From positions 62,001 to 126,000 of IMG/VR virus record IMGVR_UViG_3300030107_006644: a DNA stretch of 64,000 bases; one strand, given 5' to 3'. Each line of letters begins with the position of its first letter. Position 1 is the stretch's first letter. Shown here piece by piece: positions 6,763 through 61,241 of the stretch. The notes beneath the pieces are model-generated. The model was not told the DNA's origin. It searched no databases and saw only the letters and a program-made list of their open reading frames with translations. The position numbers and the translations under genes are program-made.

Positions 6763-6768
6763 TAAACA

Positions 6769-18076: not shown

Positions 18077-18315
18077 TGTCTATTGAGATCATCAGAAAAA
18101 AGAAAGTAGTACCTGCTTTGGACAACAAGACAGATCTTGGCGTTGACAAGCGCCGCTGGGCTAATATATACGCACACAACGTATATACAAACGATCTACA
18201 CCTTAAAAACGAACGTGGCGACTGGACTATTATCGAAGAGGAAGACTACTTATCTATAACGAACAATAAGACCGGAAAACGGTACAAATTTGTACTAGAG
18301 GAGATTGACGATTAA
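18076..18315 (+). CDS. stand-alone copy of the fibre C-terminal module
   Basis: RWANIY..DLHLKNERGDWTIIEEEDYL...GKRYK paralogous to the end of the upstream gene; TAATG coupling on both sides. Confidence 0.8.
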   Translation: MSIEIIRKKKVVPALDNKTDLGVDKRRWANIYAHNVYTNDLHLKNERGDWTIIEEEDYLSITNNKTGKRYKFVLEEIDD

Positions 18316-21300
18316 TGCCAATTTATACAACACACCTATCTTCGTCTGACGGCGCACAGATTACAGGCTCTTTAACTGTTTCAGGATCTAGTACCCTTAC
18401 GGTATATGGTCCAACTGTGCTTAACGCAGACCAAAACACAAGCCACGATCTGCAAGTAAAATCAGTCAACAAAGCTAATATGCTATATGTCGATTCTAGT
18501 ACCGATAGAGTGGGAATTGCGACTAATTCGCCCGCAGGAACGCTCGGCATCGACGGCGATTTGCACTTCCAACCAACAGCAATTTCCACCTCTCACATCA
18601 CCACTGCAGGCTCTCTGGATATTCGTGCAACCAACAACATGAAGATCGCAACAGATGGTGCAGACAGTGTGCGCATTGGACGAACTAACACGACCGCTGC
18701 AAAAATTTATATTCGTTCTGGTGCTGACAACGATCTCGTAATATCCGACTCTAAGGTTGGCATTGGAACGGATAGCCCTAGCTATAGCTTGGATGTTGAT
18801 CCTACTAGCGCATCCGCATTCAGAGTTAAAAACACTACAGCGGGCCTAGATGTAAACTGTGCAATAGAAAATACAGGCGATGACTCCGACGACGGCGTTT
18901 TGATGTCTTACACCGTTCAAGCCGGCGCCGGAGATCCGTCAGTAAGATTTGCCGTTGCTGGCAATGAAACATGGTCTATGGGCATTGACAATTCGGACAA
19001 CGACAAGCTTAAAATTTCTCAAGCGTCTACGTTGCATACAGATACGCGCCTTACGCTTGCTGGCAACAAAGTTGGCATCGGAGTCACCGATCCTGACACC
19101 ACCCTTGAGGTGTACAACGCTGGTACCCAACTTAAACTATCCTATAACGGTTCCGATCATGCAACTTTTGCTGTTGATGACGACGGAGACTTGACGATTG
19201 ACCCATCTGGTGACGCTGTAGTAATTACAGGAAACTTAACAGTTAATGGTACAACACAGACTATCAACACTACAAATACGGTCGTGAAGGACGGTCTTAT
19301 TGAGTTAAATAACGGCGCCACGTCCAACTCTAATGATTGCGGAATTGTAATTGAAAGAGGAAACACCGGCGACAATGCGATTATTGCATGGGATGAATCT
19401 GCAGATGGATTTGTTGTAGGAACAACTACAGCCACTGGCGCATCTACTGGAAACCTTACAATTAGTGCCGCACCCTTTGTTGCCTCGACAATCGAAGGTA
19501 CAGTTGTGAAGGGTACAACCTCTTTGCAAACCCCGCTGATTGAATATACAGACGGCGACGATGCTATTACGATTGCTGATGGCGGAGGGGTCACTTTCGG
19601 TGCTACTGCTGCTGTAACTGGCGTACTAACAGCTAATGCCGGAGTTGTTGTTGACAATATCACAATCGACGGAACAGAAATAGACCTTTCCTCTGGTGAC
19701 CTCACTCTTGATGTCGCTGGGGATATTATATTAAACGCTGATGGAGGCGAAGTGTCGGTTATAGACGATTCTGCTACGATAGCAGCGATCTCTAATCAGA
19801 GCGGCCAAGGCGAATTGAGACTTCATGAGGCTGCTAATTATGTTGGCTTCAAAGCACCAGCGCTTTCCGCTGATCAAATTTGGACACTACCAGCAGCTGA
19901 TGGCTCAAACGGCCAACAGCTCACTACAAATGGTTCGGGTGTGCTTTCTTGGGCCGCAGCCGGCAGTTCCGGTGGCGGAGCGACAGCTGCAGATGATATT
20001 GGCAACGGTGATGCAGCAGTCAACATTTTGACAACTAGCGGCAATATTACTTTAGATGCACAAGCCAACAATGCTGATATTATTTTCAAGGTTGATGACG
20101 ATGGTACCGCTGTCACTGCGCTCACCCTTGACGGCAGCGACGAAGGCAATGCAGTATTTGTCAACGATATTAAATTATCCTCAGATAGTGCGGCAATTCA
20201 CTTTGGCGCTGATAACGAGGTTACGCTTACTCACGATCACAACGTTGGTCTCAAACTTAAGCATACTGCAACTGCTGATGACAAACCCATTGTTCTTACT
20301 TTCCAGACTGGCGAAACGGACATAGCAGCAAACGATGTGCTTGGAGCCATTAACTTTGCGGCTCCTGACGAAGGTCAAGGAACTGACGCTGTTTTGGTCG
20401 CGGCTGGTATTGATGCAGTATCCGAAGGAGACTTTGCCAATAACAACAACGCAACTAAGCTTTCGTTCAAGACGGCAGCTTCGGAAGCAGCAACTGAAAA
20501 GATGTCATTAAGCTCCGCTGGATTGCTAACAGTTGCAGATGATATAGTGATCAAGGCTGATGGTACAATCGGAGGCGCTGATGATACAGATTTGATGACA
20601 TTAGGTGATGGCATACTTACGGTTGCTGGAGAAGTTCAGATGACTACCTTAGATATTGGCGGAGTCAATGTCACAGCTACCGCTGCCGAAATTAACCTTA
20701 TTGACGGCGGAACATCGAGAGGCACAACCGCCGTTGCTAATGGCGACGGCTTCTTACATAATGATGGTGGCACCATGCGAATGACCAACGTCAGCAAGAT
20801 GGCTGATTTGTTCGCAGGCACAGGAATTTCGGCCTCTAATGCCGTTCTCAGCATTGACGCGGCACAAACAGGGATCACTTCTCTTCTCGCCACAGACATT
20901 AAGATCGGTGAAGATGACCAAACAAAGATCGATTTTGAAACTGCCGATGAGATTCATTTCTATGCAGCAAATGCTCAAGAGATGATAGTGCAGGCAAATG
21001 TTGTCGCCCCCGGCGCCGATGACGGTACCGCTCTAGGGGATGCAAACCAGCGATGGTCTGACTTATTCTTAGCTTCCGGCGCCGTTATAAATTTCGATAA
21101 TGGAGATGTGACTTTAACTCATTCCTCCAATACTTTAACAGCAGCCGGCGGGACAGTCGCAACAGCAGCGTTAACAACGTCAACAATTGTTGCCAGCGGA
21201 ATCGTCAAGACAGACGACACCACAGACGCAACCAGCACTACAGATGGCTCGCTTCAAACCGATGGTGGCCTAAGCGTTGCCAAAGATGCTGTAATTGGCG

Positions 21301-24326: not shown

Positions 24327-25574
24327 ATGTCTACAATGCTGGAGCAAGCGATAGTTGATGCGAAAGCGCTGAAAGAAGCCGCAGTTAAGAGTGCTGAACA
24401 AGCGATAATAGAAAAATACGCACCTGAAGTTAAACAAGCTGTTGAGAGTTTGCTTGAGCAAGGTCCGCCACCGGGAATGCCGATGGATCCCATGGGGATG
24501 CCCCCCGGAGATCCGGCTATGATGGGTGGTATGCCAATGGATCCCATGGGGGCGCCTCCTCCTGCCCCCGGCGCGGGAGCCGATCCGGCCGCCGCCATGG
24601 GTTCTCTCGTTCCACCCCCTGTTGCAGGCACGCAAGGAGAAAATCTTTGCCCCTGCCCCGAAGAAGGTAAACCCGTGAATCTTGATTTGACACAGCTGGT
24701 CCATGCAATAAACGGAGAAGCAGCTATGCAAGATGCAGCTATGGGAATGGCGGCCGGCGGAATGCCTCCAATGCCTCCCGGCGGAATGCCTCCAATGCCT
24801 CCCGGAATGGGAATGGCACCTCCCCCAATGCCAGCCGCAGGACAGAGCCCGATGGCTCCCGGTGGCGGAATGGGCTTACCGCCCGGAATGATGGCAGAGG
24901 GTCAAGTCCTCGCTCTAACGCAAGAGGCTTTACAAGAAATCATTGATGAGTCCAACGACCTCGGTATTGACGAGGAAATGTTGAGCAGCATCGCAGAAGA
25001 AGTTATGGCCGGCCTTAAGGAAGAGGCCAACTTCGAAACTAGAGCAAACTTTAGTTCTCCCTCGACAGGTATGGGTGGAAACACCACGCCAGTCGGAGTT
25101 CACCAAGAGGCTGATGATATCGCATGTGCAGAACTCGCCTTGGCTGAGAAAAATGAAGCTCTCCGTCAGGACAATACGAATATCAGAGAATATGCAATTG
25201 CTCTAGAGCAAAAAAATGAACAGATTACCCAAATGTTACAGCATTTAAATGAGAGGTTGTACGTAGTTAACCTTTCGAATGCTAAACTACTATACACGAA
25301 CCGTGTCTTAAGTGATAACTCCTTGAATGAGCGGCAACGCATAAAGATTGTCGAAACCATCTCAAAGTCCGGTTCACCCGAAGAGGCGAAAGCACTTTAC
25401 GAAACTCTTCTAAGCGCAGTGGGGACACAAGTCAAACCTAAAAAGACTCCCAAATCACTTCGTGAAGCAGTCAGTAGAGACCGGTCTCTTCAGATGCCGA
25501 GAAGGCAAAAACCAAGTTCTCCCGATGCGAAAGCTATGGATAGAATGAGGATGCTTGCTGGTATCAAAAAGTGA
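24327..25574 (+). CDS. prohead scaffold/core protein (T4 gp22-like position)
   Basis: Directly upstream of the MCP; coiled coil, VNLSNAKLLYTNRVL, C-terminal DRMRMLAGIK; Pro/Met/Gly-rich insert. Confidence 0.8.
   Translation: MSTMLEQAIVDAKALKEAAVKSAEQAIIEKYAPEVKQAVESLLEQGPPPGMPMDPMGMPPGDPAMMGGMPMDPMGAPPPAPGAGADPAAAMGSLVPPPVAGTQGENLCPCPEEGKPVNLDLTQLVHAINGEAAMQDAAMGMAAGGMPPMPPGGMPPMPPGMGMAPPPMPAAGQSPMAPGGGMGLPPGMMAEGQVLALTQEALQEIIDESNDLGIDEEMLSSIAEEVMAGLKEEANFETRANFSSPSTGMGGNTTPVGVHQEADDIACAELALAEKNEALRQDNTNIREYAIALEQKNEQITQMLQHLNERLYVVNLSNAKLLYTNRVLSDNSLNERQRIKIVETISKSGSPEEAKALYETLLSAVGTQVKPKKTPKSLREAVSRDRSLQMPRRQKPSSPDAKAMDRMRMLAGIKK
24756..24803 (+). repeat. perfect 24-bp tandem repeat x2 (GGMPPMPP)
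   Basis: ggcggaatgcctccaatgcctccc twice. Confidence 0.9.
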
Positions 25575-25605: not shown

Positions 25606-27516
25606 ATGTCTGTATTACAAAAACTAACCGAGGGGATTGTTGACAGAGATCTTGGAAAGGAAGGCGCCGCCCTGCTTAGTAAGTGGGAACGTACCGGTCT
25701 TTTAGAGGGTCTTAACAATGATCATACTCGTTCTAGCATGGCTAGACTGCTTGAAAATCAAGCAAAGGAGCTTCTCCGAGAGGCTTCTACTATGGCCGGC
25801 GGTGACGTTGAAGGCTTCGCATCTGTTGCGTTCCCGATTGTCCGTCGTGTCTTTGGAGGCCTTATCGCCAACGATCTGGTTTCCGTGCAGCCTATGAGCT
25901 TGCCTTCTGGTCTGATCTTCTTCTTAGACTTTCAGGTCACACCCGGTACCGCTCCTAGACTTGGCGCCAGCGATGACGATTCGTTATTCGGCGGTGGCCG
26001 CGTCGGTTCTGCAATCACTGGCGGTGTCAGTCTCGTCGACAATGACATTGAGAAGGGTTTCTACAACCTTAATCAAGGTTATTCGTCTCCGACTGGATCG
26101 CTTCAGCTTACGCTGGTTCCGATTGCTTCCGGTACTGTTGGTAGTGGTATCCTTGATGATGCCGTAGGGGCAGTGTCCCACTCTAGCTGGAAGAACAGCA
26201 AGGCAACCTCGCTTAGCGAGCTTTGCCAGTACGATCCCGATCTTTCTGGATCTTGCGTTGTTGTTGCAACCGCTGCGGGTAATGCCCTTCTGGGCGCAGC
26301 CGGCACTGGTAGTTTGAATCGTGATAACTTAGTTGCGATGATGATTTCATACAATGCATCGGATACCGCCTCCGCAGATGGTCTCTATACGGGTGTCGGA
26401 GGTGCTGCTCGCATGCATCGTCGTCTTACTCGCTTAGTCGGCAGATCTGCAACCACTGCTGAGTACAGCAACCAAGCTTTGGATCCGGGTGATAGCACCA
26501 ACACATCTCTTTTGTTCGTGTTTGAGTCTACGGGTTCGGCAGCCGGCGCAGGAGCTACTGCGGTCAGTCATGAGACAGGCCTCAAGAACCTCTTGACTCG
26601 GGTTGGTTCTGGTGCAAGTGCTACGGTTAGAGCCAAGGCTTTCGACTATCCAATTAGAGATAATCTCAACAATGTTGGAGAAAGAGCACTTGGATCGCTC
26701 GTCGGTGCTGACCAGTGGGGACTGGAAGCCAATGAGGAAATCCCTGAGATCGACATCAAGGTCGATTCCGTGGCGATTACCGCTGTAACCAAGAAGCTCA
26801 AGGCCAAGTGGACGCCTGAGTTGGGACAGGATCTTAATGCCTATCACAACTTGGACGCCGAGGTTGAGTTAACCGGTATTCTTTCCGAGCAGATTGCGCT
26901 GGAGATTGATCGCGAAATCGTGAACGATCTTGTTGTCAACGCATCGGCTGGAACGTACTACTGGTCTCGTTCGCCCGGTATGTTCCTTCGCAGGGACACT
27001 GGTGCTGAGATTGGAGCTAGCTCTGCTGCTCCGGACTTCACCGGTACCGTTAGCGAGTGGTATGAGACTCTTGTCGAAACCATCAACGATGTGTCTGCAC
27101 AGATTCACCGTAAAACTCTCCGTGGTGGAGCAAACTTTATCGTCTGCGGACCTGAAGTTGCTAACATCCTTGAGTTCACCAGTGGATTCCGTGCCAACAT
27201 CACTCATGATGATGACAAGGGAACTGTCGGCGCTGTGAACGCTGGCTCTATCTCGAAGAAGTGGGATGTCTGGGTTGACCCATACTTCCCCCGCAACGTG
27301 ATCCTTGTGGGTCGCCGTGGTAACAGCTTCCTTGAGAGCGGCTATGTTTACGCTCCGTATGTACCACTGCAGACTACCCCCACAATCTTCGGAACGGAAG
27401 ACTTCGTGCCACGTAAGGGTGTTATGACCCGCTACGGCAAGAAGATGGTCCGTCCTGATATGTATGGGCTAGTTATTGTTCGCGGTCTACTTGGTGAGGC
27501 TGGCGCTACAAGCTAA
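25606..27516 (+). CDS. gp23: major capsid protein (T4 gp23-like)
   Basis: LVSVQPMSLPSGLIFFLDF, KLKAKWTPELGQDLNAYHNLDAEVELT, YAPYVPL, GVMTRYG. Confidence 0.98.
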   Translation: MSVLQKLTEGIVDRDLGKEGAALLSKWERTGLLEGLNNDHTRSSMARLLENQAKELLREASTMAGGDVEGFASVAFPIVRRVFGGLIANDLVSVQPMSLPSGLIFFLDFQVTPGTAPRLGASDDDSLFGGGRVGSAITGGVSLVDNDIEKGFYNLNQGYSSPTGSLQLTLVPIASGTVGSGILDDAVGAVSHSSWKNSKATSLSELCQYDPDLSGSCVVVATAAGNALLGAAGTGSLNRDNLVAMMISYNASDTASADGLYTGVGGAARMHRRLTRLVGRSATTAEYSNQALDPGDSTNTSLLFVFESTGSAAGAGATAVSHETGLKNLLTRVGSGASATVRAKAFDYPIRDNLNNVGERALGSLVGADQWGLEANEEIPEIDIKVDSVAITAVTKKLKAKWTPELGQDLNAYHNLDAEVELTGILSEQIALEIDREIVNDLVVNASAGTYYWSRSPGMFLRRDTGAEIGASSAAPDFTGTVSEWYETLVETINDVSAQIHRKTLRGGANFIVCGPEVANILEFTSGFRANITHDDDKGTVGAVNAGSISKKWDVWVDPYFPRNVILVGRRGNSFLESGYVYAPYVPLQTTPTIFGTEDFVPRKGVMTRYGKKMVRPDMYGLVIVRGLLGEAGATS

Positions 27517-31526: not shown

Positions 31527-34500
31527 ATGTCAAACACACTTTCAGAATTAAGAGGCCGGTTTAACTTCGTATCTCCGGGTATTTACGTTAACGAGGTCGA
31601 CCAGTCCCAGCCATCGGTTGAGCGGTTGGCCCAAGGCCCGGTTATTATTGGCCGATTCCCCAAGGGCCCCATGATGCGCCCCGTGGTTGTTAAATCCAAA
31701 GCACAATTTATGAGCCTTTTTGGCGCTCCACACCCCGGCGGAGCCGGCGGCGATCCGTGGAGAGGCGATGCTCATGGCGGCCCAACGTATGCCGCATATG
31801 CTGCTGAGGCGCATTTACATTCTGCTGGCGGTACTGCTCCTGCTACAATTTTTAGACTTGCAGGCGAGAAGGCTTCTGGAGCAACTGGCAACTATTCCGC
31901 TGCCGGCTGGACAACCCGAGCTAGTTCTGGTGCCCAAGTTAATCCGAATGCTGCTGTCGCTAGCAACGGTGGGGCTTACGGACTGTTCGTCATGGGTCCC
32001 CCAATGGCCGGCCTAGGCAGCGACTCGCTTAACTTCGGAAGCCTTGGGTGGCAAGGCAGCCACGCCGTCACCGGCACGCTAGCCGCTGTCTTTTATCTTA
32101 CCGAGGGCTCGATTCAGCTTGTTGGTAACGGATATAGTCCCGATGGCACCGTGGGGGATCAGACAGCCAGTCTTGGCTCTCTCATTAGGTCTCACTCGCA
32201 TGTTGGCGGCACCTATTATGATGGTGTCGGTGCGGATGCAGCCCCGTGCACATTTAAATTTAGGGTTTTAAACTCTGCGGGAACTGAAGTTTCGAATCAT
32301 ATTGCATCCTTCATCCCAAGTGCCGATCTGGACTCCTACTCCGGCATAGCCGGCGCACGCGATTCGTTCAACTGCGATCCAACCAAGACCAACGCCAGCA
32401 TCAATACTTCGGCGAACACCAAGACTTACTGGCTTGGCGAGACGTATCAGCAAAGTGTCAAGGACATGGTTTCGCTGACCGGATCCAACGCTGCGGATGC
32501 GGGCCAGCAATGGGGAGTGCTTGTAGCACTACACGACGGTGCCAATAACTTTGCAGATCATCGCGAAGATTGGCAAAACCCTTCAACAGGCTGGTTCTTT
32601 TCGCAGGACCAAGGTGCGTATGCAAGCTATCATGTAAATAACATGGAGAAATTGTTTAAGTTTCACGCGCTTGATCACGGCGAATGGGCCCAAAATAACT
32701 TGCGCATTACGATTAGCAACATTGAGCAATATACCAGCAGCAAGTATAAATATGGAAGTTTCGATGTATCAGTTGAGTCGCTTTTCGGAAGAGAGAGTAG
32801 CGTATCGGTTATCGAAACCTTTTCAAATTGTAACTTAGATAGAAATTCGCCCAACTACATTTGTAAGAAGATTGGTGATAGATACTTAGAGTGGAATTCG
32901 GATGCCAATACCGGCGGGCAACATATTGACAAGGGTAGCGAACAAAACAAATCTAGCTACATTCGTGTAGAAGTTTCGGATCTAGTGAAGTACGGCGATC
33001 CCTCGACACTCCTGCCTTGGGGTGTTTATGGGCCCTCGCGCCTTCGTTCTTGGCATGCCAACTCTGGCTCGTCTGGATTCTTTTCTAGCTCTGCCGGCGT
33101 ATTCAACCCGAGTGAGGTGTCGTGTGAAGGTGTCGCTGGATTCTATGCCACGGGAGATGCTTCGGGAATGCCCGCAACGCACCCCGTTGACTCTACCGTT
33201 TCTGGTGTCGCTGCAACCGCAACAATTACTTTTACTGGCAGTCAAACTGTCAACAGGCTTATAACCATTACATCAGCGGACGGTACCGCGAGAACCTATA
33301 CAGGTAAAACTACAGGAACTCCGGGCTCCAACACCTTTGATTGTAACAATGGTGCCGCAGTTTGCGCGACATCGTTAATGGCTGCGATAAACAACGCCGC
33401 CGGCCATTCGGGCAAAATAACTGCTACGAACCCATCATCGGGCGTCGTACTGTTAACACAAGATGTGGTCGGAATAGCCGGAAACACGACTATAACTAAC
33501 GATTTCGACGCCGCAACTGTGCCGGCAGGATTCTCCGGCGGCTCTGCAGGTGAAATCTGGTTCGGTGCCAGTGGAGCTTCACAGATGAACGGCGCCAACT
33601 TTAAGATTGAATACCCCAGTGTTCGCTTGGTAGCTACAGCCTCTATTGGCGGATCCGGCGATAGATATCACAATAGATTTGGTATCGACTGGTCAGACTA
33701 TACTTTATCAGGCGGAAACCACAAGATGACAAGCACCAATGGTGAAGCAGAACTCAGTGTTGTTGATGCGTTACGCCGACTTCCTAAAGCGGTCGCTGGT
33801 AATAGCCCAGATGATTCTGGCAATGTTGAATACTCTTGGGTGTTCACTCTGGATGACATCGTTTGTAGTAACTCTACCGATACCTCTCCAATTGGCACCT
33901 ATACTTCCGGCTCTCGCGCCGGAGGTACAAGCTATACGGCAGCTAGCGGATCGTCTGCTCTTCTTGATATCGGAGATGGCAAGGGATTCCACCAGTTCAG
34001 CACATGTCTAGCTGGCGGACACGATGGTCTCGATATCTGCGAGAGAGAGCCTTTCAGAAACACGCTTTTGGATGACGCTAGCGGAGACAAAACCGTTATT
34101 GCCATGTATAATACGATGGTCCGTGCGCTAGATACCGTTAAGGATCCGGAGTATGTTGAGTGTAATATTATAACTGCCCCCGGTCTTACGGAAAACAACC
34201 TTACCGACATGTTGATTTCGCATTGCGAAAGTCGCGGTGACGCGTTGGGTATCATTGATGTTGACGGCGGATATATTCCGGGCGGTACTGAGCAGGCCAC
34301 AATCTCGCGAGGCTCCGTAAAGGCTGTCTGGCAGAATATGCGAGACCGCACACTGGACTCAAGCTATGGCTGCGCCTACTATCCGTGGGTTCAAGTTAGA
34401 AGTTCTCAAAACAAGGATAGCGTTTGGGTTCCACCCTCTGTCGTAGCCTTGGGAACAATGGCGTCCTCAACAAAGGCTTCGAAAGTCTGGTTTGCTCCCG

Positions 34501-35021
34501 CAGGGTTTACTCGCGGCGGATTGGATTCTGTCGGAACGCGCGCAGGCTCAGCAGGCCTTAAGGTAATGGATGTTAGAGATCGCCTTACTTCCACACAGAG
34601 AGATAGAATGTACGAGAATCGGATTAATCCAATTGCCAAGTTCCCAGCAGAAGGAATCGTGGTGTTCGGACAAAAGACTTTACAAGTTCCGGCCTCCGCC
34701 TTGGACCGGATCAACGTTCGCAGACTTCTGCTGCACGTCAAGAAGCAGACCTCTATCATTGCTGCTACAACCATGTTTAGCCCGAACGATGCAACTACTT
34801 GGGCCGCTTTCAAGGGGTCGATGGATTCGTTCTTAGACGACATTAAGAGCGAGTACGGCCTTCAAGATTACAAGGTTGTGTTAGATGAGACTACCACGAC
34901 GGACGACTTGATCGATGCCAACGTTCTATACGCTCAAGTATACCTGAAGCCGACCAAGGCAATCGAATTTATCCTTGTCGACTTTATCGTTACAAGCCAA
35001 GGAGCATCTTTCGACGATTAA
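31527..35021 (+). CDS. gp18: contractile tail sheath protein
   Basis: VSPGIYVNEVD, YYPWV, WFAPAGFTRG, INPIAKF..EGIVVFGQKTL, RINVRRLL, KPTKAIEFI. Confidence 0.96.
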   Translation: MSNTLSELRGRFNFVSPGIYVNEVDQSQPSVERLAQGPVIIGRFPKGPMMRPVVVKSKAQFMSLFGAPHPGGAGGDPWRGDAHGGPTYAAYAAEAHLHSAGGTAPATIFRLAGEKASGATGNYSAAGWTTRASSGAQVNPNAAVASNGGAYGLFVMGPPMAGLGSDSLNFGSLGWQGSHAVTGTLAAVFYLTEGSIQLVGNGYSPDGTVGDQTASLGSLIRSHSHVGGTYYDGVGADAAPCTFKFRVLNSAGTEVSNHIASFIPSADLDSYSGIAGARDSFNCDPTKTNASINTSANTKTYWLGETYQQSVKDMVSLTGSNAADAGQQWGVLVALHDGANNFADHREDWQNPSTGWFFSQDQGAYASYHVNNMEKLFKFHALDHGEWAQNNLRITISNIEQYTSSKYKYGSFDVSVESLFGRESSVSVIETFSNCNLDRNSPNYICKKIGDRYLEWNSDANTGGQHIDKGSEQNKSSYIRVEVSDLVKYGDPSTLLPWGVYGPSRLRSWHANSGSSGFFSSSAGVFNPSEVSCEGVAGFYATGDASGMPATHPVDSTVSGVAATATITFTGSQTVNRLITITSADGTARTYTGKTTGTPGSNTFDCNNGAAVCATSLMAAINNAAGHSGKITATNPSSGVVLLTQDVVGIAGNTTITNDFDAATVPAGFSGGSAGEIWFGASGASQMNGANFKIEYPSVRLVATASIGGSGDRYHNRFGIDWSDYTLSGGNHKMTSTNGEAELSVVDALRRLPKAVAGNSPDDSGNVEYSWVFTLDDIVCSNSTDTSPIGTYTSGSRAGGTSYTAASGSSALLDIGDGKGFHQFSTCLAGGHDGLDICEREPFRNTLLDDASGDKTVIAMYNTMVRALDTVKDPEYVECNIITAPGLTENNLTDMLISHCESRGDALGIIDVDGGYIPGGTEQATISRGSVKAVWQNMRDRTLDSSYGCAYYPWVQVRSSQNKDSVWVPPSVVALGTMASSTKASKVWFAPAGFTRGGLDSVGTRAGSAGLKVMDVRDRLTSTQRDRMYENRINPIAKFPAEGIVVFGQKTLQVPASALDRINVRRLLLHVKKQTSIIAATTMFSPNDATTWAAFKGSMDSFLDDIKSEYGLQDYKVVLDETTTTDDLIDANVLYAQVYLKPTKAIEFILVDFIVTSQGASFDD

Positions 35022-51977: not shown

Positions 51978-52006
51978 TTGACTTTAGGGCCTCTACATGC
52001 TATTGT
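51978..52006 (+). promoter_or_regulatory. sigma70-like promoter
   Basis: TTGACT-17-TATTGT with TG extension. Confidence 0.6.
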
Positions 52007-52988: not shown

Positions 52989-53008
52989 AAATAACTATTT
53001 ATTATGCT

Positions 53009-55645
53009 ATGCCGATTTATCATGATAAGTGGCGCCAATTTCTGAAAGAAGAGGAAGAGTTTCAGAAGAACGTAGTGCGCCCCCGACTTAAACGAAACCG
53101 CTCTGCCCTCATAGACTCTGGACCCCATAATCACAATGGAGGTGGCGAATCCGGCGCCAAACCTAAGCCTCGCGGAGACTTGCCGCACGATGCTGGTCCA
53201 CTAAAAGAAGGGTTACAGCCTCAGCCTCGTTTGTTGCGCGAGATATCCGAAGACGAGGTGGAGCATATCCGCACAGCCATTGATGAAATGGGTCCAGAAG
53301 AACTCGCCTTCAATGATGCATTCGAAGGTAAGACGCGCAAGGTTATTGATTTTGCAGCCATTGACGTGGACTCTGAGCTTGGAAAGTTCATGGAGTTCTT
53401 TAGAAAGCAGGAGTACGAAGTAGATTGGAAGCGCGGGCTCGTCACAGCACTGCGAGATGTAACAACTTCGGAAGACTTAATAGATCAGCTTTTCGGACCC
53501 GGCCAGCCACCCAAAAAGAAGTACAAGAAAATTCAGATGAAGATCGGCAAGCTGTTTCCGAAGATAGCAGAAGTAGGAAAGAATCAGGCCGTACTCTTTA
53601 AGAAGGTCGTGGAACATGCCAAAATCCATCACGCGAATCGCATACCAAACCATCCGGGTAATGTCAGCGACCACCAATTGAAACAAGCACTGCCAGACGA
53701 AGAAGAATACAAGAGATACCAACAATTGTATCAACAAATGAGATTGTATGTGCCGAACTCCGGCTATTTTCAGCCGTCATGGTGGGAGGTTCCAGATTGG
53801 GCAACTAAGATGTCTAAGTATTGGCAAGAGAATGCAGCATACATTAAAGATGAGATCGATGAACTAAAAGGAGACCAGTACTCCATTATCCTCACGCGAG
53901 ATCCGATTGACATCCTTCGCATGAGCGATTTTAATAACATCACCTCCTGCCACACTCCGCCATCCAGAGGCGGGGGCGACACCTACTATAAGTGCGCAGT
54001 TGCTGAAGCTCACGGCCACGGAGCTATTGCATATGTTGTTGAAACACAAGAGCTATTAGAGGCTACTGAGACCGACACAATTGAGGCTGCTGAAGCTGTC
54101 ATCGAGCAGCTTGGAGGAGAGATCTTTCCAGACGATGTTAGGGGAAGCCATGTCGGACTCAGCACGGAGTTGAATCCAGTCTCTAGGCTACGTCTCAGAA
54201 AGTTTGTGTATGACACTCCAGATCCAGAGGGTGGTTACGATATCGGCACACAGCTAGCGGTACCGGAGAAGCGTGTGTACGGAAAGAAGATTCCCGGCTT
54301 CGTTGAGCGTGTAGTTCAGTGGGCGAGAGATAATCAGGAAGAGGCTCTTCAGAACATGCCAGTGGATGCATACGGTGATGGCATCGATTTAGGCAAGTTT
54401 AATATTGTGGGTGCTTCCTATGAAGATACTCAAGGCTATTCCGGCCGCCGGGCTCTTATGGTGCAACTAACTGGCCGGCCAAACGAAGACTTTGATGGCC
54501 AGATCGAGCAAGATGCAAGCGCGGAACATGACTTAGACACCTCTATGTTTACCGCTGGCCAAATTGAAGATGCCCAACTCCGCGCCGATGAGATAGCTGA
54601 AGACTGGAACCGTCGCTACCAAGCTGCGGAAATTCAGGCAACTGCTGAAGACGACGATGGCCAAGTCATCATCATGCTCAGAGCATATATGAAGGTTGAC
54701 TGGGGCGAAGAAGAGTGGAACAAGCTTCCGCTTCCAAGCACTGCGCGCTGGGCAGTCTCGGAGCTTAACGACTTGGGTTGGTCTTGGGCCGATGAAGGCA
54801 CGGCTTGGCTTAGGCGGGACACGCACAGACAAACAATATCTTTGGGCTTCCGTATCAACCCCGAGCATATACCAGAGTGGACCGGCATGCCGTTCACTGC
54901 AGACCCAGAAGAGATCGAAGACTTTGGCGTAGCCGTCAACGCTATTGATGACATGTACGACGGAATTAAACATTACCTCACCAGACACTACAAACTCCAA
55001 GGCATTATGGCCGGCGGTGCATTTTTAAACATGGCCATGGAGATCTCAAACAATGATATTGATCCATATGAGTGGACGCTTGAACTTGATGACCGGTGGG
55101 ATCCGGAGGAAGCTAACATTGCAATAGGTCAAGTAGAGTTCTTCTTTGATGCCGAGGAGCTTCAGTGGAACCCACAAGTTCTACAGCAGGTGCTAGACTC
55201 CCACGATTTTAGAACTGCGATTCGGAACAAAATGTTGGCAGATGCCAAAGAAGAGGTCGGAACACAGTACAACGTAGACATTTGGACGCAGGGGACGGGG
55301 GCTTTGATAGTTGATAATGGCGTAAACTACGAATTTGCACTTGTTGTTAGCAATGAGGATCCGGATGAAGTGATCGAATTGTTTCAGACAGCAGTCTGGC
55401 AACCCGGTACTGTCGATGACGAAGATAAGCTTCGCGAAATCTTTTTGGGAACACTGGAAACGATGCAGAGAGCGCGGATGCCATCTGGTATGAGAGATCC
55501 AGAGCCTATCGAACAATCTGGTCCCGACCAGCCAGATCCGCCGCCGGCCCAAAATTCTGAAGATGAGAATCTACCAAGCAGTAGATTAGATGAGAGTAGA
55601 AATATGCATAGGATGTACAAGAAATGGAGAAGCTTTATAAAATGA
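53009..55645 (+). CDS. large acidic hypothetical protein with leader-like motifs at both ends
   Basis: Late motif at 52994; N-terminal DKWRQFLKE, C-terminal KKWRSFIK; central DILRMSDF..ITSCH. Confidence 0.75.
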   Translation: MPIYHDKWRQFLKEEEEFQKNVVRPRLKRNRSALIDSGPHNHNGGGESGAKPKPRGDLPHDAGPLKEGLQPQPRLLREISEDEVEHIRTAIDEMGPEELAFNDAFEGKTRKVIDFAAIDVDSELGKFMEFFRKQEYEVDWKRGLVTALRDVTTSEDLIDQLFGPGQPPKKKYKKIQMKIGKLFPKIAEVGKNQAVLFKKVVEHAKIHHANRIPNHPGNVSDHQLKQALPDEEEYKRYQQLYQQMRLYVPNSGYFQPSWWEVPDWATKMSKYWQENAAYIKDEIDELKGDQYSIILTRDPIDILRMSDFNNITSCHTPPSRGGGDTYYKCAVAEAHGHGAIAYVVETQELLEATETDTIEAAEAVIEQLGGEIFPDDVRGSHVGLSTELNPVSRLRLRKFVYDTPDPEGGYDIGTQLAVPEKRVYGKKIPGFVERVVQWARDNQEEALQNMPVDAYGDGIDLGKFNIVGASYEDTQGYSGRRALMVQLTGRPNEDFDGQIEQDASAEHDLDTSMFTAGQIEDAQLRADEIAEDWNRRYQAAEIQATAEDDDGQVIIMLRAYMKVDWGEEEWNKLPLPSTARWAVSELNDLGWSWADEGTAWLRRDTHRQTISLGFRINPEHIPEWTGMPFTADPEEIEDFGVAVNAIDDMYDGIKHYLTRHYKLQGIMAGGAFLNMAMEISNNDIDPYEWTLELDDRWDPEEANIAIGQVEFFFDAEELQWNPQVLQQVLDSHDFRTAIRNKMLADAKEEVGTQYNVDIWTQGTGALIVDNGVNYEFALVVSNEDPDEVIELFQTAVWQPGTVDDEDKLREIFLGTLETMQRARMPSGMRDPEPIEQSGPDQPDPPPAQNSEDENLPSSRLDESRNMHRMYKKWRSFIK

Positions 55646-55824
55646 ACTATAAGTTGTGGCTAATTGTTTTGCTTTTGCTATTGGCGTGCGCACCAAAGAA
55701 AGAGGTGCGCGTACCTGAGCAGACACCGGTTGAGTTTATTCGATACGAAGAGATAGACTTTCCGGACGACGAAGAGTTGGAAGACTTGCCTGAAGCCGGC
55801 GAGGAAACAGAGGACGAAGAATAA
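55642..55824 (+). CDS. small lipoprotein with acidic tail
   Basis: ATGA overlap; lipobox LLAC after a hydrophobic stretch. Confidence 0.65.
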   Translation: MNYKLWLIVLLLLLACAPKKEVRVPEQTPVEFIRYEEIDFPDDEELEDLPEAGEETEDEE

Positions 55825-55825
55825 G

Positions 55826-56266
55826 ATGGAACTTATATCGACACACATATGCAAAGGCCAGAACATTGGCGTGCATGGAAATCTTTTTGGAGGCGTTATG
55901 CTATCGTGGCTGGATGAGGCCGGCGCAGCATACGCATGTCAGGTTTGCGATACCCCGCGAATGGTGACTGTGAAGATGGCAGAGACTGTATTTAATAGAC
56001 CAGTGCGGCCGGGACAATTAATCAAAGTGTATGGCGAGGTGTTGGAGATAGGCAACTCCTCATGCAAAGTTAAACTTCAGGCTAGAAGACACAGCGTGTA
56101 CAACGGCACGCAGAAGCCGGTATGCCAGACTGAATTAACTTACGTCAGAATCGATGGCGATGGTGAGGCGATACCGATCAGCAAAAAGGTTAAAGACGCT
56201 TATCGCCGAAAACTTGAGGAAGAGGAAGACGATTCAGAACTGTATGAGATTCACGGAGGAGATTAG
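55826..56266 (+). CDS. hotdog-fold acyl-CoA thioesterase (YciA-like)
   Basis: HGNLFGGVMLSWLDEAG, MVTV, F.RPV..G, GNSS, YVRID. Confidence 0.9.
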   Translation: MELISTHICKGQNIGVHGNLFGGVMLSWLDEAGAAYACQVCDTPRMVTVKMAETVFNRPVRPGQLIKVYGEVLEIGNSSCKVKLQARRHSVYNGTQKPVCQTELTYVRIDGDGEAIPISKKVKDAYRRKLEEEEDDSELYEIHGGD

Positions 56267-56353
56267 AAAATCTGAGATCCAAAACGGATCGAAAATGTCG
56301 AAATTCCAAAATTTCGTCGCAAGCAATTTTTCCAGATTTTCACTTTTAGTTAT

Positions 56354-56776
56354 ATGAAGCTTTTGTTAGAAAAATGGCGCAGATTCTTATTTGAAGAAAG
56401 AGAGGAAGATATGGACAGCAAGAAAATAGCGAAAATTGTCTTATATGACGGAAACAAGGTTCTATTATTAAGGAGATCGAGACATTTAAAGAAGTATCCC
56501 GGAGAATGGGATCTGCCCGGCGGCCACTTAATTGTTGGAGAAGAAGTTACAGACGGCCTCCAGAGAGAGGTTTGGGAAGAGACTGGCTTAACGATTAGAA
56601 GCCCAGAAAAGGTGTATTCCCAGAGTAGATACACCTATTTTAAGGCGCCTATGCCAACTGGTGGAATTAAACTTAGTCAGGAACACACCGAGCACGAAAT
56701 GGTAGATATGGCAAACTTGTCTAATTATGAACTACCGGAAAAATACCGAACTGCAGTGGAGAGGGCTATGAAGTGA
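56354..56776 (+). CDS. Nudix hydrolase with shared leader
   Basis: WDLPGGHLIVGEEVTDGLQREVWEETGL Nudix box; LSQEH. Confidence 0.93.
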   Translation: MKLLLEKWRRFLFEEREEDMDSKKIAKIVLYDGNKVLLLRRSRHLKKYPGEWDLPGGHLIVGEEVTDGLQREVWEETGLTIRSPEKVYSQSRYTYFKAPMPTGGIKLSQEHTEHEMVDMANLSNYELPEKYRTAVERAMK

Positions 56777-56991
56777 GAAATTTGATTAGAAAATCGCAAC
56801 AGCATATTGGCTCGCGAAATGAAACTTACTTTCAACATATGAAAGCGGCATGGAAGATTATTTACCTGCTAAAGACCCTAGAGCTAAAATGTTTCATACA
56901 TTCCTTTATTCCGGGACTATTTACAGATGCAGTATCTGAAAAGATTGAGTGTTTGCAAAAAATGGCAAGCAGAAACAAGGAGCAGCAATGA
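56773..56991 (+). CDS. DUF6356-like small protein
   Basis: ETYFQHM...IHSFIPGLF. Confidence 0.6.
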   Translation: MRNLIRKSQQHIGSRNETYFQHMKAAWKIIYLLKTLELKCFIHSFIPGLFTDAVSEKIECLQKMASRNKEQQ

Positions 56992-58346
56992 AATTAATAC
57001 TTGAAAAATGGCGAAAATACGAAGAAGAGCAGAGATTAGATGAGGTTGCCGAAATGGGCGATGAGTATGGTAGCCGATCAGATTCAGAACCCGGCCCTAG
57101 GGTCAGCGACGCCCTCCGCCGCTTCACGAGCCCGGAGTCAGCCGGAGGCCAACTCGGCAACATCGCCGGTGGCAAAGCGGCAAGCCGAAGTGTTCCGTCA
57201 CAGGTTGCAGGATTCGCCGGCGATATTCTCAATACCTATCAACAGTCTGGAGAGCACGACACTGCAGGCCACGATCCTGCCGGATCCGCCCGAACAGCCA
57301 TCGAATCTGGCGTGATCGAGCGAATTCCAAAACTTGGTCATGTCGGGTTAGCCACAGATATAGGGAATACCATACAACACCTGACTCAAGGCCGAGGAGC
57401 AGAAGCTGGCCGCACCGCCATGGCCGGCGCAGGTGATGCTCTCGGAGGTATTCTCGGCACAGCGCTCCTTGGCCCGGGCGTCGGCACTGCCATTGGAGCT
57501 ACAGCCGGCGACTGGGCTGGTCGGAGCTTAGGTCCGGGATCGGTGGCACACCGCAGATGGTCAGACCCGGGGCGTCTGATGAGTGATTTTGGCTACGAGG
57601 TCGGCGCTTTGGCCCCCGGAGGGGAAACGGCGATGCAACGATATGGCGACCGTGGCGTCGGCCAGACTTTGGATGATTTTGGCTACGAGGTCGGCGATGT
57701 TGTAGACCGCCGCGTTATCCAGCCGGCTGCTGAAGCAGCTGAATCGTTCCGGTCTGGAGAGATGTTCGGCCCACGAGGAACAGCAATTGCAAATTCGCCA
57801 TGGAACCCTCTTAGTCGAAATTTTGCTTTGTACGAGGGAGAAAGTATGGCAACACATCAAAAAACAGATCTACTAACAGAAGCGCAAGTTTTAAGAATGC
57901 GGCAATTATCGGGAATCAGTTCGAAAAGGAGGGTTGTTTTGAACGAAGAGGTAGCCACTGGCATGTGGGCCGTTGGTCTAATTGTTTATTTTCTCGTCCT
58001 CGGTGAAATGACTGACCGATGGCAAGTCGGAAAGCCGGAGGGGGGCCCACTTAGTGCTCTCGGTCGAGGCGTAAAGTCTGCATGGCAGAAGCTCAAGTCT
58101 TCCGCCGAATCCAAAGCTCAGCAAGGAGACGAAAGTCTTGAATCTGTTGTTGATGCTGTCGAATCTGAAGGAGCCCGCGCCGCTCAGTCCGCAAATTTGT
58201 CGGAAGAAGACATCGCCAGAATTCAATCAGAATTTGGAGATGACGAGCAGTTGGCAGCACTTCTCTCGCAACTTGAGGAAGCTCCACCAGAAGCATATGA
58301 GCAGGTTCTTATGCAAATTGAACAATACGTTAAATCAAAGCTATAG
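56988..58346 (+). CDS. leader-bearing hypothetical protein with glycine zipper and TM helix
   Basis: AAGGAG RBS; MKLILEKWRKY; GGILGTALLGPGVGTAIGATAG; MWAVGLIVYFLVLG. Confidence 0.75.
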   Translation: MKLILEKWRKYEEEQRLDEVAEMGDEYGSRSDSEPGPRVSDALRRFTSPESAGGQLGNIAGGKAASRSVPSQVAGFAGDILNTYQQSGEHDTAGHDPAGSARTAIESGVIERIPKLGHVGLATDIGNTIQHLTQGRGAEAGRTAMAGAGDALGGILGTALLGPGVGTAIGATAGDWAGRSLGPGSVAHRRWSDPGRLMSDFGYEVGALAPGGETAMQRYGDRGVGQTLDDFGYEVGDVVDRRVIQPAAEAAESFRSGEMFGPRGTAIANSPWNPLSRNFALYEGESMATHQKTDLLTEAQVLRMRQLSGISSKRRVVLNEEVATGMWAVGLIVYFLVLGEMTDRWQVGKPEGGPLSALGRGVKSAWQKLKSSAESKAQQGDESLESVVDAVESEGARAAQSANLSEEDIARIQSEFGDDEQLAALLSQLEEAPPEAYEQVLMQIEQYVKSKL

Positions 58347-58359
58347 TGGTAGGTAGGCA

Positions 58360-58998
58360 ATGAAACTCTTAATGGAAAATTGGCGAAGGTTTATAAACGA
58401 GGGCGCGGATCCGGAAGTCGTCCGCGATGCGTTCGCAAACACGCCTCCCGACTATATGGAGGCGTCCGTAAAGCAGAGAAACCCGGGCCCCGGATCTGCA
58501 GGTAGTACATTTTCGTCGCCAACTTCGGTACAAGAACTGGTTTCTGCTAACTGGGTACCTTACAATCATCCAGATATACAGAGCCCGGCAGTTGGGTTTA
58601 AAGCGCCGATATCTGGTGAGTTAGGAATTGCAGAAATAAGCGGACTACCAGACGATCAGGTTGTCAGATTTCAGCCCGCACACGGAGGCAAGGTGACCGT
58701 TAAAGACGAGAGCAGTCCTAAATTTGGCCAACAATTGGCAGAAGTGGCCACGGACATACCTGCTGGCAATAGAAATGTCAGTCATACAACTCTTATTTTA
58801 GGCCCATCACAAGAAGACCCAAACAAATTAAGGGTTTGGACCTTTTTCCCGGGCGATCCCACTCCAAAATTTCCAGACATTACGATGGACGATGTTCGAC
58901 GCGCTCTTGGCTCAAAAGAAGAGGAGGTCGTCGCCACTGTTGCTGATGCTAAGCAAATGGGTTACACTTTTGTCAAGCATGCCGAGGGTATTGCGTGA
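58360..58998 (+). CDS. leader-bearing hypothetical protein
   Basis: MKLLMENWRRFINE; C-terminal LILGP...VWTFFPGDP. Confidence 0.75.
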   Translation: MKLLMENWRRFINEGADPEVVRDAFANTPPDYMEASVKQRNPGPGSAGSTFSSPTSVQELVSANWVPYNHPDIQSPAVGFKAPISGELGIAEISGLPDDQVVRFQPAHGGKVTVKDESSPKFGQQLAEVATDIPAGNRNVSHTTLILGPSQEDPNKLRVWTFFPGDPTPKFPDITMDDVRRALGSKEEEVVATVADAKQMGYTFVKHAEGIA

Positions 58999-59456
58999 AG
59001 CTCCTACTTGAAAATTGGCGGAAGTATTTGAAAGAGGTTTCTATGGGCCGCGATATGACAAGCTCTATAGAATACACAGCCTTAGTGCTCGACAACGATT
59101 CGCATGAGAGGCTAGCCGTATACGCTCCAGAAGGGTGGAAAGTTATTGCCCACCATATGACAATCATCAGGCCTCACGAAATGAAAAGTGGTCGGCTACC
59201 AAGCCAATGGCTGGACTTTGAGGGATGCTTTGAAGTAACGCATATCGCTCAAAATGAGCAAGTCATGACTGCTCTGGTTGATCTTGGAGATACACCAATA
59301 CCGATGAAAGGGCCAGTCATGCCGCATGTCACTATTGCCACCAACCCGGAAACAGGTGGGAAGGCGTACATGTCCAACGATATTCCAATTACAAGCTTTG
59401 AAGAATTGTCGGAACCAATCAGCATATGCGGCGCCGTCGAGGAGGTGTTTAGATGA
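58995..59456 (+). CDS. 2H phosphoesterase-family protein with shared leader
   Basis: Two HxT motifs, HHMTI and PHVTI. Confidence 0.75.
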   Translation: MKLLLENWRKYLKEVSMGRDMTSSIEYTALVLDNDSHERLAVYAPEGWKVIAHHMTIIRPHEMKSGRLPSQWLDFEGCFEVTHIAQNEQVMTALVDLGDTPIPMKGPVMPHVTIATNPETGGKAYMSNDIPITSFEELSEPISICGAVEEVFR

Positions 59457-60427
59457 AGCTCCTATTTGAAAATTGGCGAAGGTTTATAACTGAAGAAACA
59501 GATGCAACAGGCGCTATGCCTGCACATCTTGACACAAAGAAGATCGAGGCTGCGAACCAAGAGCTTTTAGGCCAACAGGGTTATACTATCTTGCGTGAGC
59601 TTGGTAGAGGACACTACGGGGTTGTGTACGAGGTTCAGAATGAACAGAGCGGTGAGCGACTCGCAGCGAAAGTTGTCAGAAAGAGTGATAGAGAAACAGA
59701 GAATTACGAATTTGCGATGAAAAACAAGGGCTCAATGCCTCCTGAATATGCAAAATACTTGCCAGAGGTTAAAGAAATTATACCCGGAGCCTCAGACCGC
59801 AACATCATATTCATGGAGCTACTTAAACCTTTGCCAGACAGAGTGGCGCAGGAACTGTTTGCAATGGAAGATAAACCCGATGCATCGCAAAAAACAGAAA
59901 AGATCTTAAAAAGCCCCGAAGCGGTGGCTGAGTTAGTTCAAAGAATTGTCAACAATAATAGAATTTTAAACCAAATGCGCGACTTCTTAGTTAATCGGAA
60001 AGAGGTTACAAAAGCTGCCGTTAACGCAGCGACTAAATCTTCGCACTCGGATCCTGAAGGCCTCCTGAAGGCTGTGTATGGTGCCGTAGTCCGAGAACTT
60101 GAATTTCAAAGTGTTGGAGTTTACAAGTCTTTCGAGTCTGCTTTGAAGAATGATCTGCTGTTTTACTTAGATAAACAGGTTGTACCTGTTCACCAGCCAG
60201 AGCCAGACGATCCAGATGCGGATGATTTGTGGACAGGCCCGGCCATGGCAAAGACACAAGAGTTGTTCCCCGAGGCCGAGAACCTAATTAATGCTATGAG
60301 GTATTTTATGCAAGACCAGCAGTGGCGGCCTAAAGATGTGCACATAAAGAACGTTATGATGAGGCCATCGACTAATGATTTTGTAATTGTAGATCTGGGC
60401 TTGTTCCAGAGAGGGATATTTGAATGA
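59453..60427 (+). CDS. Ser/Thr protein kinase-like protein with shared leader
   Basis: LGRGHYGVVY, AAK, IFMELL, DVHIKNVM, IVDLG. Confidence 0.85.
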   Translation: MKLLFENWRRFITEETDATGAMPAHLDTKKIEAANQELLGQQGYTILRELGRGHYGVVYEVQNEQSGERLAAKVVRKSDRETENYEFAMKNKGSMPPEYAKYLPEVKEIIPGASDRNIIFMELLKPLPDRVAQELFAMEDKPDASQKTEKILKSPEAVAELVQRIVNNNRILNQMRDFLVNRKEVTKAAVNAATKSSHSDPEGLLKAVYGAVVRELEFQSVGVYKSFESALKNDLLFYLDKQVVPVHQPEPDDPDADDLWTGPAMAKTQELFPEAENLINAMRYFMQDQQWRPKDVHIKNVMMRPSTNDFVIVDLGLFQRGIFE

Positions 60428-61203
60428 AAGATTTATTAGATGCTTGGTCGAAATACGCCGATAGGCCCATGTTTGAAGAGATTATGCCTTCCGACGTCGA
60501 CACCGCCAGTTTTAGAATAAACGATGAACTTGAACACAGGGTATGGGATAAGGACGATAAATTGAAGCCAGAAATCCGCCAACGTCTTTTGGAAATAGCC
60601 TCGGAAGCTTGGGCCATTATGGGTCTTCCTACCGTAGCTGTTGACGACATAACTTTTACGGGCTCCTTGGCCAACTATAATTGGTCGTCATATTCTGATG
60701 TTGACTTGCATATACTGGTTGATTTTGGAAGCTTGCCGGGCCCCGAAGATTTGGCAGAAGTAATGATGAACGCAAAACGCGCCGCATGGAACAACAAGCA
60801 CGATATCACAATACACGGCTACGAGGTAGAGATATACATTCAGGATTCCAACGAAGTGCACCATTCTACCGGCGTATATTCGGTGCTGCATGATAGCTGG
60901 CTTGTCAAGCCCGAGAAAAAAAGGTTTACGATTGACTACGACAATGTTAAGCTTAAGGCTGCTCACATAATGAATCAAATTGATAAGATTGAAAATGTAT
61001 ATGAGCGCGGCGGCTATGAAGAGGCGATGCAAGATGTTGACAGGCTGAAAGAAAAGATCAGAAAGTTTAGAAAGTGTGGACTTGAACAAGGTGGCGAATA
61101 CTCATCGGAAAATATCGCATTTAAAGCACTTAGGAGAAATGGCTATCTGAAAAAGCTTTCGGATTTAAAGACAACCTCCTATGACAACTTAAGATCTATT
61201 TAG
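60424..61203 (+). CDS. Pol beta-superfamily nucleotidyltransferase
   Basis: TGSLANYNWSSYSDVDLH (GS..DxD), EVEIY, GEYSSENIAFKALRRNG. Confidence 0.85.
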   Translation: MKDLLDAWSKYADRPMFEEIMPSDVDTASFRINDELEHRVWDKDDKLKPEIRQRLLEIASEAWAIMGLPTVAVDDITFTGSLANYNWSSYSDVDLHILVDFGSLPGPEDLAEVMMNAKRAAWNNKHDITIHGYEVEIYIQDSNEVHHSTGVYSVLHDSWLVKPEKKRFTIDYDNVKLKAAHIMNQIDKIENVYERGGYEEAMQDVDRLKEKIRKFRKCGLEQGGEYSSENIAFKALRRNGYLKKLSDLKTTSYDNLRSI

Positions 61204-61212
61204 AAAATTCGC

Positions 61213-61241
61213 TTGACATTCTGGCCCGAATTGGCTATATT
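61213..61241 (+). promoter_or_regulatory. sigma70-like promoter for helicase
   Basis: TTGACA-17-TATATT. Confidence 0.75.

Follow-up and report, generated by a model that had tools for sequence, protein, structure and literature searches.

A terminal 14-residue leader on unrelated proteins of uncultured T4-like phages as a candidate capsid-targeting propeptide

We analysed a window of 64,000 nucleotides (nt), positions 62,001-126,000 of the 205,517-bp IMG/VR contig 3300030107_006644, in which neighbouring genes between 53009 and 61203 open with nearly the same short peptide, hereafter the leader. An initial annotation of this DNA had proposed that the leader is a modular packaging tag that loads enzymes into the phage head. 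We put slightly better than even chances on the 14-residue leader being a propeptide that targets proteins to the capsid and is cleaved off by the prohead protease, as happens with the T4 internal proteins, because this was the best available explanation and it passed every sequence-level test that was run. The packaging-tag idea stood in all of the sequence-level predictions tested; what the packaging model had not foreseen was a codon bias in the leader, which is described below.

The leader was found at the start of all seven genes to which it had been assigned (53009 to 60424), and both copies that had been called weaker, at 53009 and 60424, were present. The genes of the island are as follows.

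53009-55645, + strand: conserved protein of 878 amino acids (aa) with a weak N-terminal leader copy, MPIYHDKWRQFLKE, and a C-terminal copy (55601-55642) preceded by L-D-E
55826-56266, + strand: hotdog (4HBT) thioesterase (PF03061, E = 5.6e-15), an island member without the leader
56354-56776, + strand: Nudix hydrolase with leader MKLLLEKWRRFLFE
56988-58346, + strand: 452-aa Gly/Ala-rich protein with leader MKLILEKWRKYEEE and a single hydrophobic segment (residues 322-339)
58360-58998, + strand: 212-aa protein with leader MKLLMENWRRFINE and no family match
58995-59456, + strand: 2H phosphoesterase related to the tRNA-ligase CPD domain; a GTG start that overlaps the preceding stop codon, then leader KLLLENWRKYLKE
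59453-60427, + strand: protein-kinase-like protein with leader MKLLFENWRRFITE, matched in the N-lobe only
60424-61203, + strand: nucleotidyltransferase-fold protein (phrog_36119) with degenerate leader MKDLLDAWSKYADR (MKDLLDAWSKY)

The core motif [EDK][KNA]W[RSK][KRQS][FY] was searched in six frames of the 64 kb, with 300 block shuffles as the control. Eight matches were obtained, compared with a mean of 0.07 and a maximum of 2 in the shuffles. All eight were on the + strand within 53006-60421, seven at the start of an open reading frame (ORF) and one at an ORF end. The latter, which the initial annotation had missed, forms the final 14 residues of the 878-aa ORF (...YKKWRSFIK, then stop). When the leaders were removed, no pairwise similarity was detected among the seven proteins (best E = 0.24), indicating that the sequences behind the leader are unrelated, as had been claimed. 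Most leaders were also said to end in [LI]-x-E, and five of the seven copies in the window do. The leader was not equally present on replication proteins; none of those in the window carried the motif.

Related phages were scanned with a degenerate DNA pattern for M-K-L-L-x-E-[NK]-W-R-x-[FY], here called class 1, for which the counts from IMG/VR are lower bounds. Among the matches listed, more than 120 IMG/VR stretches carried the pattern, on contigs of 5-204 kb and often with 2-4 adjacent tagged genes. In 185,579 bacterial and archaeal species genomes (one each), it was present in 12 stretches, all on contigs of metagenome-assembled genomes (MAGs), and six of these 12 contigs were binned as Bacteroidota. 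When 50,697 GenBank phage records, among them those of T4-type phages, were searched by tblastn with the leader, no N-terminal match was obtained at E <= 10; the carriers of the leader are uncultured contigs. At least 176 ORF starts with the leader, 154 of them unique, were collected among the matches listed, and 156 leader-stripped cargo sequences from the same matches formed at least 81 BLAST clusters, with no structural or core replication protein among these clusters. That is, the cargo varied behind a constant 14-residue tag in related phages, in line with the proposed modularity. Pfam named few cargoes: Nudix, protein kinase, tRNA-ligase-type CPD, PGDYG, zeta-toxin/AAA_33 kinases, RNase T and other DEDD exonucleases, RNase H-like proteins and DUF5591. 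The tagged genes were arranged in arrays linked by ATGA overlaps, and a given cargo cluster had different neighbours in different contigs.

The consensus of the leader was M-K-L-L-[LFM]-E-N-W-R-[KRQ]-[YF]-[LIV]-x-E, in which E6, N7, W8 and R9 were almost invariant. Residues 12-14 lay outside the search pattern; residue 12 was [LIVM] in 149 of 154 leaders (97%), residue 13 was any residue, and residue 14 was Glu in 129 of 154 (84%). Past residue 14, conservation collapsed into an acidic variable linker. At the positions where the pattern permitted a choice, Asn was found 153 times versus Lys once, and Arg 154 times versus Ser 0; Asn was encoded by AAT (108) and AAC (45), and Arg by all six codons. 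It is the peptide on which selection acts, because one residue dominates while the codons vary.

The synonymous codons of the leader were strongly biased relative to the cargo background, i.e., CTC 59% versus 9%, CTA 64% versus 12%, CGA 46% versus 15% and AAG 76% versus 30%. This preference was position-specific over codons 2-11 across all class-1 loci, with the consensus ATG AAA CTC CTA CTT GAA AAT TGG CGA AAG TAT. Several candidate causes were rejected: within-genome gene conversion (synonymous-site identity of 0.74 within a locus versus 0.68 across loci), a conserved promoter or ribosome-binding-site cassette upstream of the leader (merely a weak purine-rich stretch was seen) and an RNA hairpin over the start region (mean z = +0.11). 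Neither RNA structure nor upstream signals nor gene conversion accounted for the codon bias. A signal-peptide reading of the leader was also rejected, as there is no hydrophobic core. The leader helix was amphipathic, with a hydrophobic moment of about 0.6 versus 0.3 in shuffles. In AlphaFold2 (AF2) models, the leader was a low-confidence helix detached from confident cargo cores; for the 2H protein, the predicted local distance difference test score was above 90 in the core and about 50 in the leader (residues 1-20).

Some orthologues of the 2H protein bore the class-1 leader and others a second one, M-[NK]-LLREYIRELL-x-E. This class-2 pattern was found in 30 IMG/VR stretches (L224-L253), on contigs of up to 293 kb, with 37 unique ORFs and arrays of up to five genes. 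The class-2 leader is also 14 residues long, and E14 was present in 35 of 37. Class 1 and class 2 were never seen in the same fetched locus. Leader type tracks phage lineage and not cargo, because the classes never share a locus and the 2H orthologues carry either.

The C-terminal copy was examined through the family of the 878-aa protein, which had homologues in more than 25 class-1 loci (27-42% identity) and none in the class-2 loci. Nearly all complete homologues ended in E-x-[LI]-V-x-x-W-[KR]-x-[FY]-[LI]-x-x, and most of them had a Glu six positions upstream of the Trp, toward the cargo and usually within [LI]-x-E. In the AF2 model of the 878-aa protein, terminal helices (3-35 and 858-877) were separated off by disordered linkers. 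Across 477,000 residues of six-frame ORFs, the motif was N-terminal in 209 cases, C-terminal in 29 and internal in 23, and 21 of the 23 internal copies were N-terminal copies behind an upstream in-frame Met. On these counts, the signal is terminal, with the Glu always between tag and cargo.

As a separate observation, a 719-aa ORF of locus L028 has an internal leader copy at residue 483 (KIFNNWRKFLTE), and the segment directly behind it stands in L036 as a tagged gene of its own. This ORF looks like two cassettes fused via stop-codon loss.

The capsid-targeting reading depends on a protease of the T4 gp21 family, which the phage had been said to encode. Such a gene was identified in the head and tail module of the window, together with the genes listed here.

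5176-6762, + strand: large terminase
6769-8817, + strand: portal (PF07230, T4-type)
10634-11254, + strand: prohead protease (Peptidase_S77, PF03420, T4 gp21 family; E = 3.5e-30)
25606-27516, + strand: gp23-type major capsid protein, 636 aa (PF07068), with propeptide LLSKW...LLE
31527-35021, + strand: tail sheath

The protease scored 105.4 bits against a Pfam cut-off of 27 and aligned with T4 gp21 at 34% identity; in gene order, it comes after the portal and before the capsid protein. Three long contigs had the protease together with leader genes. The N-terminus of the protease, M-S-K-K-LLREYYEL, is leader-like and is followed by L-T-E at residues 22-24. M-x-K-K-LLREYYEL opened all 80 protease homologues fetched. 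No second LL[RK]E[YF] was present in any frame of the window, and the N-terminus of the protease is a close match to the class-2 leader. In the capsid protein, the likely maturation site is L-R-E|A at residues 57-60, where T4 has its own. In the GenBank record of T4, gp21 starts ...LLIETW and the gp23 propeptide reads ...LLNKW..LLE. The element common to the leader, protease and capsid propeptides is two hydrophobic residues, any two, and then W/Y. We treat this likeness as a lead and not as proof.

Other features of the head module were recorded. A 150-aa ORF just after the protease (11251-11703, + strand) opens with four close [LIV]-x-E motifs (LRE, IRE, VRE and VFE), a pattern that would be expected for a core protein chopped by the protease. 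The gp23 model matched the capsid protein in two stretches, which points to about 250 inserted residues behind the propeptide region. A putative scaffold gene lies at 24327-25574. Between the protease and capsid-protein genes lie two very large + strand ORFs, 12406-16359 (1317 aa) and 18315-24203 (1962 aa); no PHROG match was found for either, and they may be internal head or decoration proteins.

Every gene of the window is on the + strand. Besides the T4-type head and tail module, the window holds a replication module with DNA polymerase fragments, SSB (49662), a UvsX-like recombinase (50506), a 5'-3' exonuclease (52014) and a DnaB-type helicase (61271), and the leader island sits within the latter module. 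The motif ACTATTTA occurred 11 times in the window, all on the + strand, compared with 2.1 expected on both strands. Nine of these copies stand 15-90 nt upstream of head or tail genes, and the other two front the two halves of the island, confirming the claim that the motif called late precedes 53009 and 56988 within a replication neighbourhood. We infer from its position that ACTATTTA is a late promoter. The promoter-like features of the island and its flanks are as follows.

51978-52006, + strand: sigma-70-type promoter-like site TTGACT-N17-TATTGT, upstream of the 5'-3' exonuclease in the left flank
52994-53001, + strand: late-type promoter motif ACTATTTA, 8 nt upstream of the 53009 start codon
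56916-56923, + strand: late-type promoter motif ACTATTTA, upstream of the operon 56988-61203
61213-61241, + strand: sigma-70-type promoter-like site TTGACA-N17-TATATT, upstream of the DnaB-type helicase in the right flank

In 1.1 Mb of class-1 loci, the motif CTATTTA was found 345 times on the strand of the leader genes and 33 times on the other. Upstream of the leader genes in class-1 loci, the closest promoter-like motif was CTATTTA for 95 genes and the sigma-70 type for 6. CTATTTA was not enriched within 120 nt of each leader gene (11.9% versus 10.7%); most leader genes lie inside operons, and the tests of strand asymmetry and nearest motif are more informative than the 120-nt test. As for the replication genes, near-consensus TTGAC[AT]-N17-TATATT sites were noted at 49553, 51978 and 61213 (+ strand). 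These are classical sigma-70 sites and not of the Bacteroidota -33/-7 type, which is odd given that half of the MAG contigs were binned as Bacteroidota.

In the mechanism that we propose, the amphipathic helix would bind the scaffolding core of the T4-type prohead, and tagged proteins would be trapped as the shell assembles. Cleavage by the S77 (gp21-type) protease would follow, behind the Glu that closes [LIV]-x-E (residue 14) and perhaps at L-L-E6 as well, and would free the enzyme from the core; the mature cargo would remain in the head and be delivered to the host along with the DNA. In the 878-aa protein, this helix would act from the C-terminus, the Glu again standing between tag and cargo. 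That tagged proteins bind the core and are cleaved, packaged and injected is what we infer from sequence. The leader may double as a junction for the exchange of cargo genes between phages, because the cassettes begin with the same ~40 nt and lie in ATGA-overlapped arrays. We tentatively extend this to a broader scenario, which we judge somewhat more apt to fail than to hold, in which an abundant, uncultured lineage of T4-like jumbo phages turned a core-binding motif, also present on its own protease and capsid propeptide, into a universal 14-residue loading tag. Any enzyme gene recombined behind the leader would become cargo, an arsenal of at least 81 families would be injected before the first transcript, and a sister lineage would use a second, co-evolved tag.

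Several observations weigh against the capsid-targeting reading. Two of the seven copies in the window (56988 and 60424) are without [LI]-x-E, and [LIV]-x-E is a short motif whose residues equally suit an amphipathic helix. Two residues before the upstream Glu, Thr replaces Leu/Ile in about half of the homologues of the 878-aa protein. The strong codon bias of the leader is not predicted by a pure peptide signal. The leader has no detectable sequence similarity to the N-termini of GenBank phages, T4 included, and its likeness to the protease and capsid propeptides amounts to 3-5 residues that were spotted after the fact. In addition, the label 'late' was given to ACTATTTA from motif position only, and some cargo resembles ordinary cytoplasmic nucleotide enzymes, namely P-loop kinases, DEDD exonucleases and HAD-like phosphatases, the last so labelled on DxD motifs alone, with no family match. 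Finally, a docking tag for another hub would account for most of the same facts.

Such a tag would be a docking helix for a non-capsid hub, i.e., a replication or nucleotide-metabolism assembly, an RNA-repair complex or a self-associated multi-enzyme body, and would involve neither cleavage nor packaging. We consider this unlikely. The amphipathic moment of the helix and a motif that is strictly terminal and works at either protein end would suit docking, as would the nucleotide or RNA substrates of the annotated cargo (Nudix, 2H/CPD, kinases, DEDD exonucleases and nucleotidyltransferase) and the location of the island inside the replication module. However, docking leaves unexplained why conservation ends with [LIVM]-x-E at residue 14 in two classes, why the Glu shifts to the cargo side in C-terminal copies and why the leader resembles the N-terminus of the prohead protease. 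The promoters of the island are of the head/tail-gene type, unlike those of the neighbouring replication genes, whose products in the window are also devoid of the motif.

The codon bias raises the alternative that the element acts mainly at the nucleotide level, in translation initiation or coupling, as the site of a translational repressor or as recombination homology, and that the peptide is a by-product. The position-specific strength of the bias, the synonymous-site identities of the leaders across and within loci, the ATGA overlaps of stop and start codons and the change of neighbours around a given cargo from phage to phage would fit this alternative. We hold it to be quite improbable: a single residue wins at Asn and Arg positions while the codons vary, class 2 differs in sequence yet keeps the length, heptad pattern and E14, C-terminal copies cannot serve initiation, the upstream DNA is not conserved, and RNA structure is absent. 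An even more doubtful alternative, to which we assign very little probability, is that the leader is an N-terminal degron that hands the enzymes to ClpXP or a similar host- or phage-encoded protease for timed removal. One class of ClpX N-degron, attributed to Flynn et al. in 2003, reportedly reads Met-basic-three hydrophobic-X5-hydrophobic, a pattern that the leader fits. ClpX is known to recognise N-terminal degron classes (PMC12723719). A phage ClpX homologue adjoins the leader island in L004 (7848-9137), L005 (about 6675-7880) and L069 and also lies beside it in L050, on the opposite (-) strand. Nevertheless, ClpX was detected in no more than four of about 130 loci, and the window yielded none. 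A predicted helix with four almost invariant residues is also unlike the typical degron, which is usually unstructured and has a loose consensus. The C-terminal copies and E14 would be unexplained, and late-type promoters fit the removal of early proteins poorly.

We compared the capsid-targeting reading with known systems. The prohead protease of T4 cuts after L/I-x-E, and the first 10 residues of IPIII suffice for packaging and allow foreign proteins to be loaded (PMC9026906, PMC3012670); T4 Alt is trimmed at both ends by gp21 (PMC9026906). As with the T4 internal proteins (IPI, IPII, IPIII and Alt), a short N-terminal propeptide stands here on otherwise unrelated proteins, ends in the L/I-x-E motif of a gp21-type protease encoded by the same phage and precedes a cargo set that differs among related phages; one large cargo carries signals at both ends, Alt in T4 and the 878-aa protein here. 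Unlike the T4 sequence of 10 residues, the leader has 14 and is nearly invariant even between phages with only 40-50% identity in orthologous proteins. Its cargoes are mostly enzymes from at least 81 families, whereas those of T4 are small basic proteins; the genes form ATGA-overlapped arrays, and the phages that carry them are marine 'far-T4' phages, uncultured and about 200 kb in size. In giant phages, a protease related to gp21 cleaves many proteins of the head interior behind a Glu, and much protein is ejected with the DNA (PMC9026906, PMC7411985). The ejected head proteins of phiKZ, 201phi2-1 and SPN3US share this trimming, but their propeptides are long, protein-specific and of the S/A-x-E type, with no single portable leader described, in contrast to one short invariant tag.

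Within the T4 family, similar motifs occur in the protease (LLIETW in T4 gp21, LLREYY in this phage) and in both capsid proteins (LL[NS]KW). They lie in stretches that the protease cuts away or is proposed to cut away (PMC9026906), but are on essential structural proteins and are not portable. By description, encapsulin cargo-loading peptides are comparable short terminal peptides that bring diverse enzymes into an HK97-fold shell, except that they are usually C-terminal, are uncleaved and serve a cellular nanocompartment instead of a virion. Literature searches by the residue string of the leader returned chance strings only, and searches for capsid targeting returned only work on T4 and giant phages.

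If the capsid-targeting reading is true, the injected protein set would be far larger and more enzymatic than that of T4, and the first seconds of infection would have to be rethought for environmental phages. Dozens of unknown families would be labelled as injected host-takeover or counter-defence factors by sequence alone, and a portable natural packaging tag would be supplied. Even with another role, a near-invariant peptide that is shared by at least 81 unrelated families, is restricted to viruses and is missing from both cultured phages and the literature searched is an undescribed sorting signal.

The assignments of the island genes were also examined. The Nudix hydrolase was confirmed by a PF00293 match. 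The 2H assignment was borne out by two H-x-T motifs, H53-H54-M-T56 and H111-V-T113; across 30 sequences, H54, H111 and T113 were invariant and T56 was nearly invariant, and an orthologue matched PF08302. The kinase assignment held for the N-lobe, which fits a protein kinase model, and not for the rest of the protein, which was unmatched; leader-bearing orthologues were found in six loci. The nucleotidyltransferase assignment received a strong match to phrog_36119 and only weak Pfam matches. Its relatives in the phage's own family retain a degenerate W-x-x-[FY] N-terminus, and alignments with homologues in Lak phages, cyanophages, Cr30 and Molly begin only at residue 16-36. The hotdog thioesterase was 53-69% identical in four relatives, and the 452-aa protein weakly matched the tape-measure family phrog_167 (E = 4.2e-6). 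The genes of 56988-61203 form a tightly packed operon. For the 878-aa protein, no Pfam, PHROG, NCBIfam or PADLOC family, PDB sequence match or tblastn match in cultured phages was found, and there was no meaningful fold match (TM below 0.12). A 66-aa ORF that overlaps the end of its gene (55624-55824, + strand) encodes a lipoprotein-type signal (Leu run, then A-C) and an acidic tail, and a comparable small lipoprotein gene was seen within the leader island of L004 (6449-6871).

The source phage is a distant member of the T4-like myoviruses, because the nearest cultured phages by capsid protein were Flavobacterium phage immuto (45% identity), Microcystis phage Mel-JY01 and Rhodothermus phage RM378. 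The DNA of the island showed no similarity to GenBank phages. Further recurrent N-termini were observed on neighbouring genes of L004, MKITESKLKSIIEEE and MKLTKSRLKQIIKEE (835-1416 and 1688-1954), and the cultured Maribacter phage Molly_1 (L222) has the neighbouring N-termini MNLKTLVET and MNLKSLVES (5923-6720 and 9114-9623). Shared leaders may be a wider habit among marine phages.

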